From Cyanophora paradoxa CCMP329 (lineage: Eukaryota; Plantae; Glaucophyta), in the NCBI GenBank assembly GCA_004431415.1, contig QPMI01000005.1:1178001-1242000 (forward strand): a DNA stretch of 64,000 bases, read 5' to 3'. A program made the translations under genes and the position numbers. The notes below the pieces were generated by a model. That model was given only the letters and a program-made list of their open reading frames with translations. It made no database searches and was not told where the DNA came from. The stretch's first letter is position 1, and each line of letters begins with the position of its first letter. This document shows, in pieces, positions 27,129 to 37,922 of the stretch.

Positions 27129-30100
27129 CTAGCCGGACCCCTCCGTCGACGAGGGCGTACCCGGGGCGAGGGCGGGCGAGCCCGGGGTACCCTCGACCGG
27201 CTCGTGGAGGGTCTCGAAGAGCACGGTAACCCCTGGCGGGGCCGGCCAGGACGGCGCAAGCGCCGGCCCCGCAGGGCCCCCGGCGGCCGGGCCGGCGCCC
27301 GCCGCATCCTCTTCCTCCAGGGGGGTAGAGGCGCCTTCCTCCGGCTCCGCGGGCGGCTCGGGCGGCGGCGGGTCGGCCGGGGCGGGTACGCCGTTGCTCG
27401 CCCCGCTTCCCCCGCTCCCGCCGCTGCCGCCGCTGCCGGTGCCCTCGCTCCCCGCGGGGGAGCCGCTCACGTCGACGACCGCCGGGGGCCCCTCCGCCGC
27501 CGCCGCCGCCGCCAACACCGGGCAGGCCTCCTCGGCCCCTTCCTTGCGGGCGCTGGGCCCGGCCGACTGCGCCGGCCGCGGCGAGGGCGTCACCTCTCCG
27601 CCCTCCTCGTCCTCGTCCCCGAACCAGGCGATGCGGGCCCGCCCCTTCTTCTTGGCGCCCGCGGCCGCGGACGCCGCCCCCGCCACCTCCGCCAGGCCCT
27701 TGACCGACACGCGCCCCGAGGCGCGCGCCGACGAGGGCGGCGGCTCGGGCGAGGGCGACACGATCCCCGCCTTCTCCTTGAACCTGTACCCCCCCGAGAG
27801 TCATGTCCGCGCAGCGTACCCCCCCCCCAAACAGAATCGTGACGTCACGCACTTCCTTGCGGCCTCTTGGACGCGCATGAGCTTGCGCTTGGCGTGCAGG
27901 TGACGCGCCCGCAGGTTCTGCGAACGAAAGAAAGCGCCCCGTAAACAGCGGATTCGAACGGAACTAGACCGGAGTTTTCGCGTACCCGGACGATGGCGGC
28001 GTCCATGTCCGTCACGAGGAAGTGCAGCTTCGTGACGCTCTTCTTCCCCGCCTCGACCTCCTTCGAGGTAACCGTACCCCCCTCGTCCTCGCTCCCGCTG
28101 GGCGTGGCGTCCCGTCCATCCTTCTTCCTCTGCTTCCGCTCCTCCTTCCAGCACATGCCCATGAGCCGCCTCCGCAGCTTGAACTGCGCGGAGCTAATTT
28201 TAGCACGGCCCGAGCGTTTCCTGTAACCCCCGCACCTTCCGGAAGGCGTTTAGCCAGCGCATCTTGGGCGTCTCTCGGAAAGCTTCGTTCACCATCGGCG
28301 GCGCCGGCTTGACCGTAAGCTGCGACGTACCCCATCAGGAGGCCGGGAGGGAGGCAGCGGAGAGGGTTTCAGGCTCGCTCGCTCGCCTTGTAGCAGAGGT
28401 TCTGGAGGGCCCACTTGGCCGACTCCATCCGCCCGTGCTGCAGGAGGAGGAGCAGCAGCTGGTCCCGCACCTGAGAGGGGTACGGGGTCAGGAGACAAGA
28501 AGGGATTGAAAAGGGGGAGGGGGTACGCGCACGGCCTGCTCCTCGAAGTGCCCAACGAGGCCGTGCTTCTGTAGGATGTCCCCCAGCCGCGCCTCCTTCC
28601 ACGCCTGCGGGGGGTACGTGAATCCGAAGGAGGGGAACGCTCGGCGAGAGGAAAGGGCCCCGCGGGGATTCGAACCAGGGGGTCCTGGAGCTGGTAGGAC
28701 TCCGGCTCGTCCTCGACGAGGGCCCGCGGGTCGCAGAGGTGGTGGTACAGGCCGAAGACGCGCTCCATCGTCGTACCCCTCCTGCGCGTGGTTCGGCCAG
28801 AGCGGGGTACCCCCACAGGAAAAAAAAGGAAGCTTCGCACTCGGATTCGTCGACGTCGATGGCGGTGGAAGACGCGGAGGAGAAAAAGAGGTCCAAGAGG
28901 TCGGTAACCAGGCCCTTGAAGGCGTACTGGGGTGCGGGGAGGGGGGTACGGGATTAAGAAGCGCGGCGGGGGGGTGGGGGGATGGTAGCGCACGGCCCCG
29001 ATGCCCGCGGGGGGTTCCTGGGAGGGAGGCGGCGCGTGAGGCCGGGGTACGGGATTTCGAAAGGGGTACGGGGCGCACGAGGTGAATGCCGAGCTGCTTG
29101 AGGACCAGCACGACGCGCGTACCCGGCGTGGTTCGCTCCTTGGGCTTCAGCAGGCCGGCCTGGTTCAGCGATCTGCGGGGTACGGCGTTAGGCTTTCTCT
29201 CGTGGGGGGTACAGGCGCGCCGGGCCGGGCGGCGAGGGGGGTACCGCCGGTTGCGCTGGTGGGAGGTGGTGAAAATTCCGGCCCCCGCGAACTTGCCCCC
29301 CGCCCCCAGGATCTCGTCCGCCGTGGGGGGTAGCTCTGCGTCCGTCCGCACTGCGCACGAAGGTGAGGCGGGGGCAATCGGATGGATGGGGTTACGCACG
29401 CCGGATGCTCCGCGTCCAACGCTTTCGAACGTGGAACTCCATCACCTCGGCTGCGGTCCCGGGTTCGAATCCGGCGAGGCACGCTTCTTTCAGGGGTACG
29501 CACGCGTCTCGAGGAGCTCCTTCTGGCCGATGGCTGCGCCGATCATGTTCATCGGGTTCCAGTGCTGGAGCATTCCCTCCATCTGGGGGGTACGGGTGCG
29601 TTAAGAACGATCGAAAGCAAGGCACTCGCTCCTCAGGGCCCGCGCCTGCATGCGCCGGGCGCGGGCCTCGGCCCCCCGCTGGCTCTTGAGCGCTTCCATG
29701 CTTTTCGTCACGTTAGAGAGCTTGAGAACGAGCTGAAGGAGCTTCGCGCCGATCGAGCCCAGCAGGCCCATCCCGATGAACGCCGTGATGCTGCGGGTAC
29801 GCGAAAAGTTCAGGAGGGGGGGTACCGTTGTGCGGAAGGGGAGGGGAGGGGTACATTGCGATGGCGCGGGATACAGTGCGGCGGGGCACGTAATCGCCGT
29901 ACCCCAGCGTGCAGGCTGCGGGAGGGGGCCGCGGGGCGCGCGATCGGCCGCGGGGGCGGAGGGGGAGTCGCGCGGCACAGGAGGGAGGGGAGGGGTACAG
30001 GCCGCGCACACGTCACCAGGGAGAACCACATGTTCAGGGCGTAGTCCGAGAACTCTGGCTGGGCGGCCTGCGCAACCGGATTCAAAAGGAATCGATAGGA

Positions 30101-33100
30101 AAGAAACGGATAGAAAAGGAAAGGAAAGGAAAGAAGAGGAAGGACCTGCTCGGTGATCTTGATGGCGAGGGCAATGGCCGTAATGATCGCGAGGAAGAAC
30201 GCGTAGATGAAGACGCTGCGCGCGGATCGGATCAAATCCGGATCAAATTGACTTGGAGCGAAGGGGCGGGGCGCAGCGGAGCGCACAAGGGCCGATTAAG
30301 CAGCAGCGAGACGAAGAAAGACGTGTTGAGCATCGCCTGCGGGGGGAGGGGCTCGCTCAGACGCGGCGAGATCAAAAGCGAAGCGGCCGAGAGGCGGGCG
30401 GGGGGAACGCAGGGGGGCGCGCGCGCCTTGTACACCCGGAGGAGGCGAACCACCTTTAGGACCGAGAGCAGGCGCATGATCTGAGAGCGAGATTTGATCT
30501 GAGAGCGAAAGAGAGGCTTGAAGGACAAGAGAGAGCGCACCCGGAAGAAGCGGGTGATGACCGAGAGTTTGAAGAAGCCGGCGGACCCGTCGAGGCCGGG
30601 CACGTCCGTGATGAGCGACGGGAAGAGGTACCTGTGATCCTCTTCAGGAAAAGGAAAGGAAAGGAAAGAAAAGGAAGGAGAGGGGAGGGGATGGGGGGGT
30701 ACCAATTTGCGCGGAGGAAGCGGGGGAGGCGCTGGTCGCGGGGGCGCAGCGCCCACTGGACGCCGATGTCGACGAGGAAGGCGGAGGTGAAGAACCAGTC
30801 CGCCCACTGCGAACGAAGCGGGGTACACGCTTCGTCAGAGGAGGCGCGGCGCACAGCAAATGGGGAAGCTAGAAGCACGGCGCAGCGACCAGAGCAACTT
30901 GAAGCACGGCTAGAAGCAAGGGGCACAGCAACTAGGGAAGCTGGAAGCACACACGAGGTCTTAGGGTCCCTCCAAGCGCGAGCGCGAGCTTGGGCCCCGT
31001 TCTGATCTAACCTAATCCAATCTGATCTGAGCCCATCTGATCTGAGCCCATCTGAGCGGACCTTCAGGGCGACGAGGGCGCGCGGGGGCATGGGCCCCGC
31101 GTCGACGAAGGGCGCCACGGCGACGGAGAAGGAGGCCAGCGAGAGGAGCACCATCAGCACCTGAGGGGGAGTGGATGAGGGAGGCGCCCCGGAAATTCAA
31201 AGGGGAAGGGGAGGAGGAAGTTGGAAGTTAGCGCCGAGGGGCGGGGCGGGGCGGGAGATGAGGAGAAGCCGGGGTCGGGTCGGGGGAGGGCGACCACTGG
31301 AGCTCATCCAAAGGGAAAGCAGGGGGGGAGGGGGAGGAAGCGGTCGGGGGGTACGGGCCTGGGCGGCGAAGTCGGCGGCGTCGATGCGGGACTTGAGGGG
31401 GCTCAGCTCCGCGTTGAGCGCCTCCGCCGCCGCCAGCACGGGGTCTGCAGAGGGACGGGTACAGGTCAGAGCGGAGCGGAGCGGATCGGCAGAGCGGCGG
31501 ACTATCGATCTATCTATCTATCTTCTATCTAGATGCTGGCAGGCAGGCTCTCTCCAGAGCGGGGATTCAGGAGCAGAGTTCTAGAGTGGGGCGGCAAGAG
31601 ACTGTGGAGGCAGAGCGGCAGGGGCGGCGGGGGCGGACCGCGGTGCTTGGCGCGGTCCGAGAGCGAGTCGGTGGAGGCCGTCTCTGAGTAGAGCGAGTTC
31701 TCCCGCCTGCGAACGAAACGGCCCCCGGGGCCCGGGCCGGCGCCTTCTCCCCCTCCCCCTCCTCCTCCTCCCCCCACGCCGGCGCCGACGGAGCTGCTTG
31801 TGGGGGCGGAGGAGGAGGAGGGGAGGGACGGCTCTCGATTCCGGTGGACGGCGGGCTGGCGAGGGGTACAGTGAGTGGGGCACCGCGTCAGTTCGCTTGC
31901 TACTCAGAGCTAGATAGATAGATGGAACGGCCGGGATCCGAACGAACCCGGAGGTCGGAGATGGTCAGGTCGACGCTGCCCCTGGGCCCCAGCATCTGCG
32001 CGCGGCGGACGGCTCGCAAGGGCGTGTCGTCGTCGTCGCTGGGCCGGGGCGGGGGCGTGGGCGGGGCGCTCGCCTTGTCCCACTGCCGCTCCCGCCGCGT
32101 CAGGCCGTAGTAAGAGTCCTTGTCTTCCTGCTCCTCCTCCTCCTCCTCCTCCAGGGATCGAGCCTGGGGGTACACGTCACTCGCGGTGGAGGGGGTACAC
32201 GCGCGGATCGCCGCGTGCGCGCCTCAGAGGCGGCTATGGAAGATCGCCTGCCCCGGGGGCGGGCCGTCACCAGCCCGGGTAGCGCCAACGCCTTTTCGTC
32301 GTCCAGGGTCACCTGGGTACGCGATTTCTTCAGAGCCCTGCCCATTCGTAATCCTGTAACCCTCTGTCGCCCTCACCTGACGTCGGAGGTCCGCGAGTCG
32401 CTCGCGCTGCTTTGCGGTAAGCCCCTCGCGCACCAGGTCCCGCAGCTGTACCCCTGTGAGACGCCGAGGGGGGGGGGAAGAGGCGGGGGCAGGGGGAGAA
32501 CTGAGCGGGGGAAAAGGCCGCGCACCGCGTCCGGGTCCCCATCGATATCGTCGAACTCGAACGACGTCCGCGCGCGCGCCTGGCCCGGCGCGGCTGTCAG
32601 GGGGGGGAAGGAGCTGGGGGGGGGAAGAAGCCGGGGGGTAGAGCACCGCCTCGCGGATCTTGCGGATGCGACGGACGATGGCTGCCGGGGCGCGCCAGAT
32701 CCAGCTGCCGGCTCGGCGCCCCCCCGGAGCGGACGCGTTCTGTACCCCCTCGACCGCGGGGGCGGCGGCGGCGTCCGCCGCGCCGCGGGCCAACAGCGCG
32801 CCGCCCACGACGCTCGAGCTGGTGACTAGAAGGGATGGCACGGCCGGGCTCTTCCGGCCCCCCTCGGGAGGCGGCGTCGCCAGCCCGCTGTTGTTCAGCG
32901 GCGTCGACATCCGCCGGCCTTGCAGCCTGGCGACAGCCGCAGACGTCGAAGGCAAAGGCGAGGTCGACGGCAAGGGCGAGGTCAATGGTAAAGGCGAGGT
33001 CGCCCGCGATCCTCGCCGCGACGCCGATGCCGATGCCGACGCCGGCGCCGATGCCGAGGCCGGAGCCGCCTCGGCGGCGGCGGCGGCGGCGGGGCCGACC

Positions 33101-35833
33101 GCCCCGGACGCAGGCTTCTCCCCCCCCCAGAAGCTCAGAATCCGGGAGAGGACCTGGCAGATCCCTCAAAAGGGGGGGAAGGAAGCGCGGGGGGTACGAA
33201 GTCGACGCACCGCGACGACGTGGGCCTGCCGCGCCTCGGACGCCTCCAGCAGCGCGGCGCGGAGGCCGAAGGTCCGGCCCCGCCGCACCCGCGCCATGTG
33301 CCACGCGATCTGGGCGCCCGGGCTCAGGCGAGGGGGCTGCTCAGGCGAGTCAGTCATCCGAGGCGCGCGCGCACCGAGGCGGCGCGGTGGCGCTCGGAGG
33401 CGCGGCGGACGACGACGGCGTAGACCGCCGCGACCGCGCACATCGCGACGAAGAAGCACGCCCAAACGGTGTCTGATGCCGAAACGGAGGGGCGTAGATT
33501 CGTTAAGAGTTGGGAGACAGCTCGCTCGCTTAGAGGTAGCGAGCGCACAGAGGATCGCGTTGTCCCCCATGCAGGCTTCCCGCACGCCGCTCGTCACGCA
33601 GTCGCCCGTCGCGGCGATCACGTCCACCTCGTCTGCCCCGGGGCGCCCCCGTTAGGCTGTATGGGGTACGTGGTTGCGCGCGTGCGGGGGGGTACCGGCG
33701 ATCCCGTCGTTGTCCGAGTCCCAAGTACCCTCGGGGTCCAGCGGGAAGGCGTCGTGGCCGTCTGTACCCCGCGTGAGGGGGTACGCGGTTTCCGAGGGAG
33801 GGGATACCCGTACCGAAGACGCCGTCGTCGTCCTTGTCCAGATCCAGGCGCAGGAGCGTTCGCCTCCGGCCCCCAGCGGGTGCCTATACCCCCGCAGCAG
33901 TCAGGGCCGCCGGCCCGTGAGCGGGCGGAAGGGGCGGGAGGGGTACCGGGGCGGCCCAGACGAGCTGGTCCCGGTAGATGGAGGCGAGGGGGAGCGGGGT
34001 ACCGGGCGCCGGCGCCGCGGCGACGCAGACGCTGTGGAAGAGCGGGGTCCCCGCGGGGCCCTCGCTGCGGTACAGCAGCAGCCGCCACCCGCCCGCCGGC
34101 GTCCGCTGCCGGGCGTGCGGACGTCAGTTTCACGCGCGCCGGCGCCAGTGGGGCGGCGATGCGGCGGGGGCGGGCGGGCCGGACCTGCCATAGTAGGACC
34201 GAGCCGCCCTGGGGGGCGTACAGGTGCATCTCCTCAGCCGAGTCCAGCGCGTCTGGGGTACGGCATCACAGAGGATCACGTGGGCCGCTGCGGTTCGGGG
34301 GAAGGGGTGCGCCGCACCGGACCAGGTCCCCAGCTCGGAGTGGTAGACGCGCAGCCGGTAGGCCGCGACGGGCGGGCCGTCCGGCGCGGACGAGGGGGCG
34401 CTCGCAGGCTCGGAGGGGCCGGACGGGGGCCGCCCCAGAACGACGGCGAGTAGGGGGGGCGAAGAGGCGGCTCCGAGGAGGTAGACGAAGGGGGCGGAGG
34501 ACCAGGAGGAGGGCCCGAAGGTCGAGAGCGAGCGCGAGGGGAGCGAGAGGACGTTCAGTACCCCGTCCGCGTACGCGGAGGCCTCCCAGGAGGGGTACGG
34601 CGCCGGGACGACGACGCCCCGGGGGTGCAGCCGGACGGGGTACGCCGTCTCGATCCAGGAGGCGACGCAGGCGCCGGAGGGGAGCGCGGAAGGGGTACCG
34701 GGTTCCGACTCGGCCATAGCCATGCGGGGCAGGAACAGGTTCGATCCGGCGCGGAGCGTGAGCCTCTCGCTGTACCCCGTCTCGGAGTGGAAGAGGCGGG
34801 CGCTCGACCGGTTGGCGCTCGGGTCGAACTCCTGCGCCAGCGTGTACGGCCCGCAGGCCTGCGCCGGCGCCTCGGCGGGCGGCAGCGAAGAGGGCGGGGC
34901 GCGGGGGCCGACCTGGGGCGAGAGGAGGAGGGCCGGCGGCTCGGGGCGGAAGGGCACCTGAGCGGCGCGAGAGCGGTCGGCGGGGGCGGGGGCGGGGCGG
35001 GGGCGGGCGCGGGGCGCGGGGCGCACGGGGCTCGTCTCGACAGCGCCGCGCGCGTCGAGTCGCACGGAGACGACGTCGCCGGGCCGGCCCCCGGGCCCGC
35101 CCCGCCACGGCCGCCGCCCCCGCCACCGCAGAGACGGAGCTGCGCGCGCGCGCGCGGGGGACGGCGGCGTGAGTGGCGATCCCGCCGCCGCCCACGGCGC
35201 CCCGCGCGCACCTCGAGTTGCTGTACAGCAACACAGCCTGCACGGCGCGTCGGCGGGCGCGTCGGCGGGGCGGCGGGGCAAGCGAAAGCGCACGCTCTTG
35301 CGGACGGCGTAGTCGTTGCCGTAGAGAACATTGACGCCGCCGGCCTCGAACGAGAAGAGCGCCGCCAGCTTGTCGACCGGCGGCGTGTAGTAAAGCTCCG
35401 CGTAGCTGTGCGATGCGCACCGTCGGCCAGGGTCCGAAGCGGCCCAGGAGGCCGGGCGGCGGGGCGGGGCGGGGCGGGGCCGGACCCCTGGATCGCGTAG
35501 CTGGAGGCCGTGCCGACGCGCCCGTCGCCCTCCTCGTCCACCAGCAGCCACAGGCGGTCCCGCGCGAAGACAAAGCGGTCCTCTGCAGAGCGCGCGGCCC
35601 GTCAGCGCGAGCGGCTAAACGCGGAGCGGGGCGCCTCGCTCGGCGAGGACGAGCGCACCCAGCATGAAAGGGCCTATCCTCGCTGATGCATCTTCAGCTG
35701 CCGCCGGCGCCGAATACTCCGCCCAAGCAGCGGGGGCAAAGTCCGGCAGGCCGCACGGCGGCGGCCCGGGAAGCGCTGCGGCGTGCTGGCCCAAGAGGGC
35801 CAGCAGCCCGAGCAGCACCGCTAGCTTCTGCAT
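27129..35833 (-). CDS. 6-TM voltage-gated-type K+ channel fused to a signal peptide, large ectodomain, thrombospondin type-3 repeat and an extra TM helix
   Basis: Signal peptide MQKLAVLLGLLALLGQHAAA (35833). TSP3 repeat DLDKDDDGVF|DGHDAFPLDPEGTWDSDNDGIA|DEVD (~33845-33620). TM helix YTVWACFFVAMCAVAAVYAVVV. Exons from the TSP3 repeat through S1 (VLMVLLSLASFSVAV) and S2 (WADWFFTSAFLVDI) join in consistent phase. S4 is RFFR|IMRLLSVLKVVRLLRVYK, the pore is WFSLVTSCTLGYGDYVP (TLGYGD at 29893-29910), and S6 contains FIGMGLLGSIG. A long C-terminus ends at 27129. Confidence 0.8.
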
Positions 35834-36069
35834 GGCCGCGTTCGTCGGCCGCGCATCGCGGTCACCGCCGCTGCTGGAGCCAGCAGCTGTAGGTAGCTCG
35901 GTGAAGGTATTCTGCGCTTATAGCTATGAGCTCGTGCTTCTCTGAAAGCGTCTCGGTTGGGGGGAACGGACAAGCGGGGGATACCGCTCGCACAAGCAGC
36001 CGTCGAAGCTGGAGAGCGATCCCCCCGGGAAAGCGATCTTTAGCTAGCTCATTTTGTACCTAGCACGAC

Positions 36070-37922
36070 ATGGGCCGACAGCGGCCTGCCAAGCGTGCGC
36101 GTGCGGAAAATCCTTCGGGCTCGGTTAGCTCGGCGAGCGGCAGCACTAACCACTTCATGCGGCTGCCCGATGAGCTGGTCCAGCGCATTTTCAGCGAGCT
36201 GGAAGCGACGGAGGCGTTCGAGGAGTGCCGGCTGTGGGCGGTGGACAGGCGGTTCCGCCAGCTCGTGCGCGAAGTGCACTGGCAGCAGCTCCGGGTCGAG
36301 TCCAGCGTGCACGTGAACGCAGTCCAGAAGGAGCGTGTAAGAGTGCACAGACAGCGGTTACGCCGAATCGCGGCTCGCGTAGAGAGCGGGGCGATGCGGG
36401 GCTGCAAGAGACTCGTCGTTGGTACCTTGGATGCTGGTGAATTCGAAGATCTTGCGATGACAGGTGTGCACACCGCAATTTCCGACCGCACGCGCATGCG
36501 CACTTGGCTTATAGAACTAGTCGCGCAGAAATGCTGTCGGCACTGTCAGCGGCGCCCGCCCCGCTGGAGCATATCTCCTTCTGCTGCTGCCTTCCATCCA
36601 GTTTCCTGAAGGCATTCCACTCCGCTCCTCTCCAGTCGCTCCATCTGGAGGGGGCAGCGTGCTCCGAATTCGTCGCGGCCGCCGTCCCGGGCCGCCTCCC
36701 GTACCTTCGGGAGCTTTACCTCGGCACGAAAGATCGCCTGGTCTCTCTTGCTCGAGCGGTGCGTTCGCGAAGCAGATACAGCGGGGCGCTGGCTCTGCCG
36801 CTCGCCTCTGACTCCGGATCCGCGGTCAGCTGCAGTCGAAGCTGATGCACATCTGGCCGGGACTGAAGAAACTCTCGTGCGGGGTGCGGGACGGCGCTGC
36901 GCTTCGAGCGCTCGCGGGGCTGCCTCTGGACGAGCTGCGGGTAGAAGTCAGCCCACGGCCCTCCAACAGCTTCGTCTTCAGAGTAGAAGTCGCGAGGGGC
37001 GCCCTCGACGAGGCCATCGAATCGCTAAACGCCGACTGCGTGCGGGCGCTTCACCTGCCCCCCCGCTCCGAGGTGCTCGGGCCCAGCGGCCTCGCCGCTA
37101 TCATCCGCTTCCGTCACATCGAGGAGCTGACCGTCACGGTCCGCCCGGCCCGGCCCTCCCGATCCAGACCGAGACTCTGACGTCGAATCGCCTTTCGCCA
37201 GGTCGACCACACGTCCAGCGGTGTGCTCGCGGGCCTGGGCGCCCTGCAGAAGCTGCGCTCCCTGTCGCTCTGGCTGGACGTGCGCTCTCCGCCGCGCCCA
37301 CGCCGCAGCCCTCGTAGCCTTCCTCTAACACGTCCGTCCCGCAGGCCTCTGCCGCGCCCAAGGGCGCCGCCATCCTGCTGCAGGCCGCGTCGGATGGAGT
37401 GGAAGCGTCCCAGCGGCTCGAGTCCATGACCCTGCGCATCTACTCCACTGAAGAATCGCGGCGGTCGAGGCAGCCGCGAGTGCCGCTGGACCCCCCCAGC
37501 CTGGCCTCCCTGGTCCGCGTCTCCCGGCCGTACCTTGACGAGCTATCCATCGAGGACGGCCCGCCTTCGTTCGACGTCCTGTCGGTCCGCGCGCCCGCGC
37601 CCGCGTCCGCGGCCGCCCGTCCCGCGGCTGACCGAGCTTGCAGGAGATCGCGCGCCCCGGCCCGAAGCTCGAGAGCGTGCACCTCGACTACGAGCTACCA
37701 GAGCCCGAGGACGCAGACTCCGGGGTACAAGAGATCAGCGCCCTGGAGGGGCTGCTGGAGCTGTCCGACGACCGGCACCCCGACCTGGAGATCCGCGTCG
37801 ACGTGAGCCTCGCGTTCTGCGACGCGCAGACTCGGGAGAACCTGTCTGTCCTCCGCAACCAGTTGCAGCTCGAAGGTGACAATCTCCCCATCGCCATCGA
37901 ATTCAGCGAGCGGGACTGGTAA
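36070..37922 (+). CDS. F-box/LRR-like protein
   Basis: F-box HFMRLPDELVQRIFSEL...LWAVDRRFRQLV. LRR-like units include LQSLHLEG, LPYLRELYLG, WPGLKKLS, LQKLRSLSL and PKLESVHL. Stop follows IEFSERDW. Confidence 0.8.

Follow-up and report, generated by a model that had tools for sequence, protein, structure and literature searches.

A Cyanophora paradoxa gene encoding a predicted beta-propeller ectodomain and a K+ channel core of the voltage-gated superfamily in one transcript

The window analyzed here is a 64,000-nt stretch of the genome of the glaucophyte Cyanophora paradoxa CCMP329 (contig QPMI01000005.1, positions 1,178,001 to 1,242,000), GC-rich eukaryotic DNA in which short introns are numerous. 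A gene on its minus strand, with its ATG at 35833 and its stop codon at 27129, comprises 44 coding exons that form a single frame of 1,783 residues. Its predicted product begins with a signal peptide and an ectodomain, continues through an extra transmembrane helix (TM0) and a long linker, and then enters the six transmembrane (6TM) segments, S1 to S6, of a K+ channel. The elements are listed below in window coordinates, with the evidence for each in brackets.

27129..35833, minus strand: whole gene, 44 coding exons, 1,783 residues (exon table, RNA contigs)
35774..35833, minus strand: predicted signal peptide, residues 1-20 (basic start, Leu-rich core, small residues at -3/-1, hydropathy 1.82; exon 1 in RNA contigs)
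33468..35773, minus strand: ectodomain, residues 21-521, exons 1-13 (gene model, RNA contigs)
35092..35104, minus strand: two single-base omissions of the reference in G/C runs of exon 5 (RNA contigs hold the extra bases and keep the frame)
33842..34924, minus strand: segment homologous to the predicted beta-propeller of a paralog, P0002, residues 187-460 (28% identity, pairwise E 2e-28)
33625..33844, minus strand: TSP3-like Asp-rich repeat, residues 460-494 (two Dx[DN]xDG motifs, at 462 and 484; TSP_3 E 0.076)
33408..33467, minus strand: predicted extra helix TM0, residues 522-541 (hydropathy 2.44, then an Arg-rich stop-transfer stretch)
31359..33407, minus strand: predicted cytosolic linker, residues 542-972 (46% Pro/Ala/Gly/Ser; no Pfam domain in the exons scanned)
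31101..31160, minus strand: S1, residues 973-992 (gene model, profile alignment)
30750..30806, minus strand: S2 with D1008, F1015 and D1018 (counter-charge and charge-transfer spacing)
30571..30707, minus strand: S3, atypical, with the usual Asp out of register (profile alignment)
30427..30555, minus strand: S4 (basic residues at 1067, 1070, 1073, 1079, 1082, 1085 and 1088, at every third position, with Ser at 1076)
30152..30291, minus strand: S5 (gene model, profile alignment)
29893..30046, minus strand: pore helix and K+ signature TxxTxGYGD, residues 1147-1155 (sequence, profile; RNA joint 29915/30010, four runs)
29724..29871, minus strand: S6 (gene model, profile alignment)
27853..29723, minus strand: predicted proximal cytosolic C-terminus, residues 1191-1566 (ordinary composition; no Pfam match by exon)
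27129..27783, minus strand: last exon, low-complexity tail (63% Pro/Ala/Gly/Ser)

The 43 introns range in size from 49 to 255 nt; 37 have GT-AG and six GC-AG borders, each with an AG acceptor. The GC donors (14% of introns) lie between 29027 and 35660, and RNA joints back four of them. The frame, described in the first-pass annotation as free of stops from the TSP3 repeat to S2, is open over all 1,783 residues once bases present in RNA are restored, whereas the uncorrected reference frame reaches a stop at residue 376 because exon 5 (35139-35027) lacks two single bases. An extra base behind 35092 was present in RNA contigs of three runs and another behind 35104 in those of two runs, both within G/C runs. 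The frame break in exon 5 is therefore read as an assembly error, and a pseudogene was ruled out given that this sole break is missing from the RNA. No second copy of the gene was found inside the window.

Eleven sequencing runs from three studies, presumed to be RNA, each hold 16-45% of the window's sequence words. RNA contigs of four runs were compared with positions 29880-35879. These contigs are spliced, with 13 introns of the model (33946-29915) represented by joints, almost every one in three or four runs, and the joint 29915/30010, which falls inside the K+ signature, present in four. The most informative contig, X1 record 1 (1,743 nt), holds 33012 at position 517, 31855 at 1234 and 30806 at 1636, and the gene model predicts the last two offsets exactly. 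A further 516 nt extend 5' of 33012, and the contig depth (7.04) equals that at 33727, 33602 and 33432, which represent the TSP3, post-TSP3 and TM0 exons, respectively. X1 record 1 carries TSP3, TM0, linker, S1 and S2 on one contig, and its offsets, length and depth bear out the earlier proposal of continuous splicing from the repeat through the extra helix and linker into S1 and S2. Five junctions (33814-33153) are inferred from the length and depth of this contig and are absent from the joint rows shown.

When 33850, which lies just behind a variant site where the contig would begin, was chosen as the contig start, the exonic length of the model to 33013 was 525 nt versus the 516 nt in X1 record 1, an in-frame difference of 9 nt. 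RNA contigs of two runs break at 33012, at the edge of the same region (33012-33153), and the shortfall near this position suggests that the Ala/Ser repeat of the linker differs in length by three codons. The ectodomain is covered by additional contigs (34471-34760, 34340-34592 and 34567-34857), and a 587-nt RNA record spans exons 7 to 3 with a leftover length that fits exons 2 and 1. Two long RNA records of 3,509 and 2,324 nt, set against 3,413 and 2,233 coding nt, give 3' untranslated regions of 96 and 91 nt; for the 14 introns 3' of 29880, these two lengths are the sole support.

The gene is expressed, and because RNA contigs span the interval from TSP3 to S2 and cover the 6 kb compared, one spliced transcript very probably encodes signal peptide, ectodomain, TM0, linker and S1-S6 in frame. 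The first-pass annotation had placed all of these in one transcript, and both the RNA contigs and the S1-S6 profile match described below agree with it. It is very improbable that two neighboring genes, one for a receptor that terminates after TM0 and one for a channel that begins at Met667 (32909), have been joined by the assembly or by rare read-through. The public models of two family members do finish just after TM0, and one contig, X2 record 6, starts at 32969. However, the end of the public model reflects read-through into an intron with normal donor and acceptor, position 32969 sits in a short tandem repeat where contigs break, and X1 record 1 and X6 record 13 extend 5' beyond 33012, with record offsets that match the fused model exactly. 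A channel mRNA starting near 32909, the outcome originally named as a refutation, is not the sole form observed, since contigs from two runs extend 5' beyond this point; two separate genes were rejected on the contigs that pass 33012 in the same direction.

Two other joints had non-canonical ends. The joint 30418/32964, with a 21-letter side, was rejected as the product of misplaced GC-rich contigs. The joint 33844-33956 (24-letter side, depth 19-24, three runs) skips an intron and 48 exonic nt (16 codons) and may represent a paralog with higher expression and a shorter loop, or a misplaced contig.

The ectodomain comprises 500 residues, at the low end of the 500-600 estimated previously, and the linker 430 residues of low complexity; the Arg-rich stretch after TM0 fits a stop-transfer helix in a type I protein. 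Single exons (15-70 codons each) were scanned against Pfam, NCBIfam and PDB, for the most part without matches; for this protein Pfam returned no propeller, GAIN/GPS or other domain. The TSP3 repeat recognized at first pass is represented by two spaced Dx[DN]xDG..D motifs, similar to those of bacterial TSP3 proteins, and the genome matches closest to it are outer-membrane-type proteins of Bacteroidota, one of which has clear TSP_3 repeats (57.7 bits). Its own score is nevertheless below the Pfam gathering cut-off (13.2 bits versus 25, E 0.076; PF02412/PF18884), and the protein-atlas feature rows TSP_3 and TSP3_bac were both under 0.9. The element, about one and a half repeats in all, is thus best termed TSP3-like, formally short of family membership. 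Exon 2 (35520-35545) encodes a degenerate acidic motif (residues 74-79) that roughly corresponds in position to a perfect DxDxDG of P0002 (residues 91-96) and may represent an additional Ca2+ site ("calcium blade") close to the N-terminus.

The channel core occupies residues 973-1190, the C-terminus running thereafter to 1783. A profile built on nine prokaryotic K+ channel sequences aligned with residues 976-1185 at 60.6 bits, compared with 11.8 bits for the best of 500 shuffles; the sensor part alone scored 10.8 bits versus at most 7.7 in shuffles. In this alignment the S1-S4 sensor and the S5-P-S6 pore are collinear in one domain, with the K+ signature TxxTxGYG located between S5 and S6, and the best PDB matches of the filter exon, although weak, are K+ channels. 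The acidic-Phe-acidic spacing of S2 (D1008, F1015, D1018) is in register, as compared with Shaker. Arg or Lys occupies seven of the eight third-position sites of S4, and the S4-S5 linker holds one charge; the Arg/Lys-rich S4 and GYGD filter reported at first pass are both confirmed. A pattern of seven to eight charges in S4 and few in the linker characterizes animal outward rectifiers, but gating direction is not decided by these parts (PMC4565715). Judged by sequence, the core belongs to the 6TM voltage-gated K+ channel superfamily, and its pore is probably K+-selective and voltage-dependent.

None of the named K+ channel families tested appears to fit the protein, and the original description of the channel as Kv-type holds only loosely: the S1-S6 K+ core stands, but no T1, cyclic nucleotide-binding domain (CNBD) or RCK domain was detected. 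For T1 (BTB), the linker exons gave no Pfam match, the linker being of low complexity. A tandem RCK pair is longer than the 376-residue proximal C-terminus, and weak tests for RCK gave neither a Pfam match by exon nor a match to two bacterial RCK/TrkA tails. Equally weak tests for a CNBD gave no Pfam match by exon and no match to one MloK1-type CNBD. S2 and S4 presumably resemble those of EAG-type channels. Membership of Shaker-type Kv1-4 was rejected on the signal peptide and TM0, which replace a cytosolic N-terminus, and on the undetected T1; that of the CNBD channels was set aside on the weak tests above. BK membership was also set aside: an outside N-terminus is predicted, but weak tests detected no RCK, and the likeness to S0 is one of predicted topology. 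The proximal C-terminus (27853-29723, 376 residues) has a globular-like composition, and it might be guessed that basic amphipathic stretches toward its end (residues 1470-1500 and 1545-1568) bind calmodulin or lipid.

An exhaustive search with exons 6-7 against 1.84 billion representatives returned only two matches, both C. paradoxa EukProt models: tig00000215_g18534 (P0001) and tig00021043_g17612 (P0002). P0001 is 98% identical over residues 311-552, with three residue differences, two of which are RNA variants, and departs 5' of residue ~306-310. RNA contigs of three runs depart there too, and the loose RNA end at the departure is in frame and homologous, with differing residues. Because of the three residue differences and the 5' departure, P0001 is assigned to a different locus, a second expressed gene. 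The region common to both copies (~residues 306-533) covers the C-terminal half of the predicted propeller, the repeat and TM0, and its counterpart in the window is as follows.

33432..34513, minus strand: tract ~98-99% identical with the second expressed copy, tig00000215_g18534 (pairwise identity, RNA variants)

Variants cluster in residues 334-533, with eight sites in 671 exonic nt versus none in the next 1,879 exonic nt (Fisher p 2e-5, the sites not being independent). The tract reflects either gene conversion between paralogs or a partial duplication that did not include this channel. The second relative is more distant: the ectodomain aligned with P0002 over residues 187-537 at 28% identity (E 2e-28), in an alignment that includes the strand leading into the first Asp motif as well as the Cys motif that precedes TM0. 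Both TM0 and this Cys motif are kept in P0002, and its public model holds the first Dx[DN]xDG motif only, possibly through an annotation skip. Both public models finish just after TM0, P0001 by reading into the intron behind the TM0 exon, and the fusion would therefore be hidden from proteome surveys. Two metagenome scans matched no relatives. Three word-index protein searches returned the query only, and their length window, which excludes proteins of 1,300-1,800 residues, makes them uninformative on full-length kin.

Upstream of the channel gene, an F-box-like gene on the plus strand (36070-36609, Pfam E 2e-4) stands head to head with it, ~240 nt from the channel ATG. A short out-of-frame upstream open reading frame (35823-35856) starts at 35856 and overlaps the channel start codon.

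The fold search recommended at first pass was run on the ectodomain of the paralog. Residues 150-495 of P0002, in the best of five models built from an alignment three sequences deep, gave a predicted local distance difference test score (pLDDT) of 54 and a predicted template modeling score of 0.59. The top fold matches were all beta-propellers: Foldseek returned TolB, prolyl-oligopeptidase-type and kelch folds (best E 2e-6, for TolB), and a fold search placed an S9 peptidase (Z 12.3), bacterial DPP4 (Z 11.7) and DPP10 (Z 11.1) among the matches. Comparison with the PD40/DPPIV_N clusters of the atlas gave template modeling scores of 0.5-0.56. Repeated four-strand blades closing into a propeller are suggested by these matches, all obtained with the model of the paralog at the same pLDDT; Pfam gave no match. 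The ectodomain is therefore likely, at modest confidence, to be a beta-propeller of the TolB/PD40/DPP-IV class.

To our knowledge, the only large outside domains of K+ channels belong to separate subunits (DPP6/10, LGI1-ADAM22, LRRC and AMIGO proteins). No K+ channel of this receptor-like build was described in the literature searched, which included few subscription papers. The Kv4-DPP6/DPP10 assembly likewise sets an outside beta-propeller and one transmembrane helix beside a voltage-gated K+ channel (PMC9409431), DPP10 being among the top folds above. However, DPP6 and DPP10 are separate type II proteins with a hydrolase domain, whereas the Cyanophora module, predicted to be type I, contains no hydrolase, includes a TSP3-like stalk and forms part of the channel chain; the likeness observed is one of fold. 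BK/Slo1 (KCNMA1 type) has in common the K+ signature, the voltage sensor, an extra helix before S1 with an outside N-terminus and a cytosolic helix-S1 loop (bioRxiv 10.1101/2021.06.01.446568). To this plan the Cyanophora protein adds a cleavable-type signal peptide, a 500-residue ectodomain and a 430-residue loop, and RCK was not detected; its S0-like outside N-terminus is a topology predicted from hydropathy and charge. Prokaryotic 6TM Kv-like channels (KvAP/"ion transporter" type) share the collinear S1-S6 and short S5-P linker but have nothing comparable N-terminal of S1. In the TRPW proteins of choanoflagellates, also unicellular eukaryotes, a beta-propeller is fused N-terminally to a 6TM channel (bioRxiv 10.64898/2026.06.15.732144); that propeller, however, is a WD40 domain in the cytosol, and the pore is of TRP type.

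Polycystin-1 (PC1) and its relatives (PKD1, PKD1L1-3, PKDREJ) combine a large N-terminal ectodomain and extra transmembrane helices with a 6TM domain of the voltage-gated superfamily (PMC12799467). PC1 has 11 transmembrane helices, GAIN, REJ and PKD domains and a TRPP-type non-selective pore, and assembles 1:3 with TRPP, whereas the Cyanophora protein has a predicted 7, a GYG filter and a charged S4. Membership was rejected on the helix number, the filter and the lack of any GAIN, REJ or PLAT Pfam domain. The family also offers a precedent for receptor-channels whose precursor is cut (PMC12799467), and shedding of the ectodomain or cleavage of the long exposed linker could here separate a receptor portion from an ordinary 6TM channel, by analogy with polycystin-1-type autoproteolysis. 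This is improbable given that exon-level scans found no GAIN/GPS or other Pfam domain and no conserved cleavage motif was seen between the two ectodomains.

By analogy with these systems, we tentatively favor, at somewhat short of an even chance, a tetrameric voltage-sensor K+ channel with a DPP6/10-like accessory module in the same chain, the main role of which would be to shift gating upon binding outside the cell. The signal peptide would send the N-terminus out of the cytosol, TM0 would stop transfer and the six core helices would insert as usual, giving seven transmembrane helices with the N-terminus outside, as in BK. Four propellers would then lie above the K+ pore, each on a short, Ca2+-stiffened TSP3-like stalk. 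TM0 would pack against the voltage sensor, as do BK S0 and the DPP6/10 helix, and a ligand or surface partner on the propeller would shift voltage gating or kinetics. DPP6 and DPP10 act on Kv4 via their transmembrane helix at S1-S2 (PMC9409431). The 430-residue flexible linker argues against a direct pull from TM0 to S1 and would only tether the module; any coupling would therefore have to run through packing of TM0 on the sensor within the membrane.

The same low-complexity linker would let TM0 float free, and the ectodomain-TM0 module may do no more than anchor, cluster or traffic the channel (at a flagellar or cortical site or an organelle lumen) without a change in gating. Propellers are common protein-binding surfaces, and the DPP6 ectodomain is needed for trafficking and surface stability rather than for gating (PMC9409431). 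Such a role is possible yet rather unlikely: conservation of TM0 and its flanking motif between ectodomains that are only 28% identical, albeit in two sequences only, goes beyond the need of a plain anchor. External Ca2+ sensing, with the TSP3-like repeat gating the channel directly, is less likely than either gating-tuning or anchoring and has little probability. The two Dx[DN]xDG motifs lie ~30 residues from TM0 and such motifs can be regulatory, but many of these sites are structural (PMC3123361), only about one and a half repeats are present and, annotation skip permitting, the public model of P0002 holds just the first motif.

Several points weigh against the gating-shift reading. The RNA contigs are not single molecules and can neither show transcript ends nor exclude an extra short isoform. 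S3 has no Asp in the usual register. No homologs were found outside Cyanophora, in length-limited searches that could not reach full-length proteins of 1,300-1,800 residues. The fold rests on the paralog, on one of five models three sequences deep, and an earlier structure model reached a pLDDT of 38; Z-scores differ little between propeller classes, and the DPP likeness may reflect a shared fold only. A disordered loop of 430 residues need not place TM0 beside the sensor, and the functional role is predicted from sequence, models and analogy.

A more far-reaching form of the gating-shift proposal, doubtful at present, is an undescribed receptor-type K+ channel family in which the extracellular propeller, upon contact with a ligand, prey or a partner cell, would directly retune the voltage-gated K+ pore of the same chain, ligand specificity being diversified as gene copies exchange the N-terminal propeller half. 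A receptor-channel design is established for TRP-type polycystins (PMC12799467). If true, a K+-selective voltage-sensor channel with its own ectodomain would represent a new route from outside contact to a change in membrane potential in a single cell, and would offer a one-chain test system for the coupling of a single accessory helix to a voltage sensor. The channels of the host, an early-branching plant relative among the glaucophytes, are unstudied, and its fused protein is invisible in public proteomes, in which the gene models are cut after TM0.

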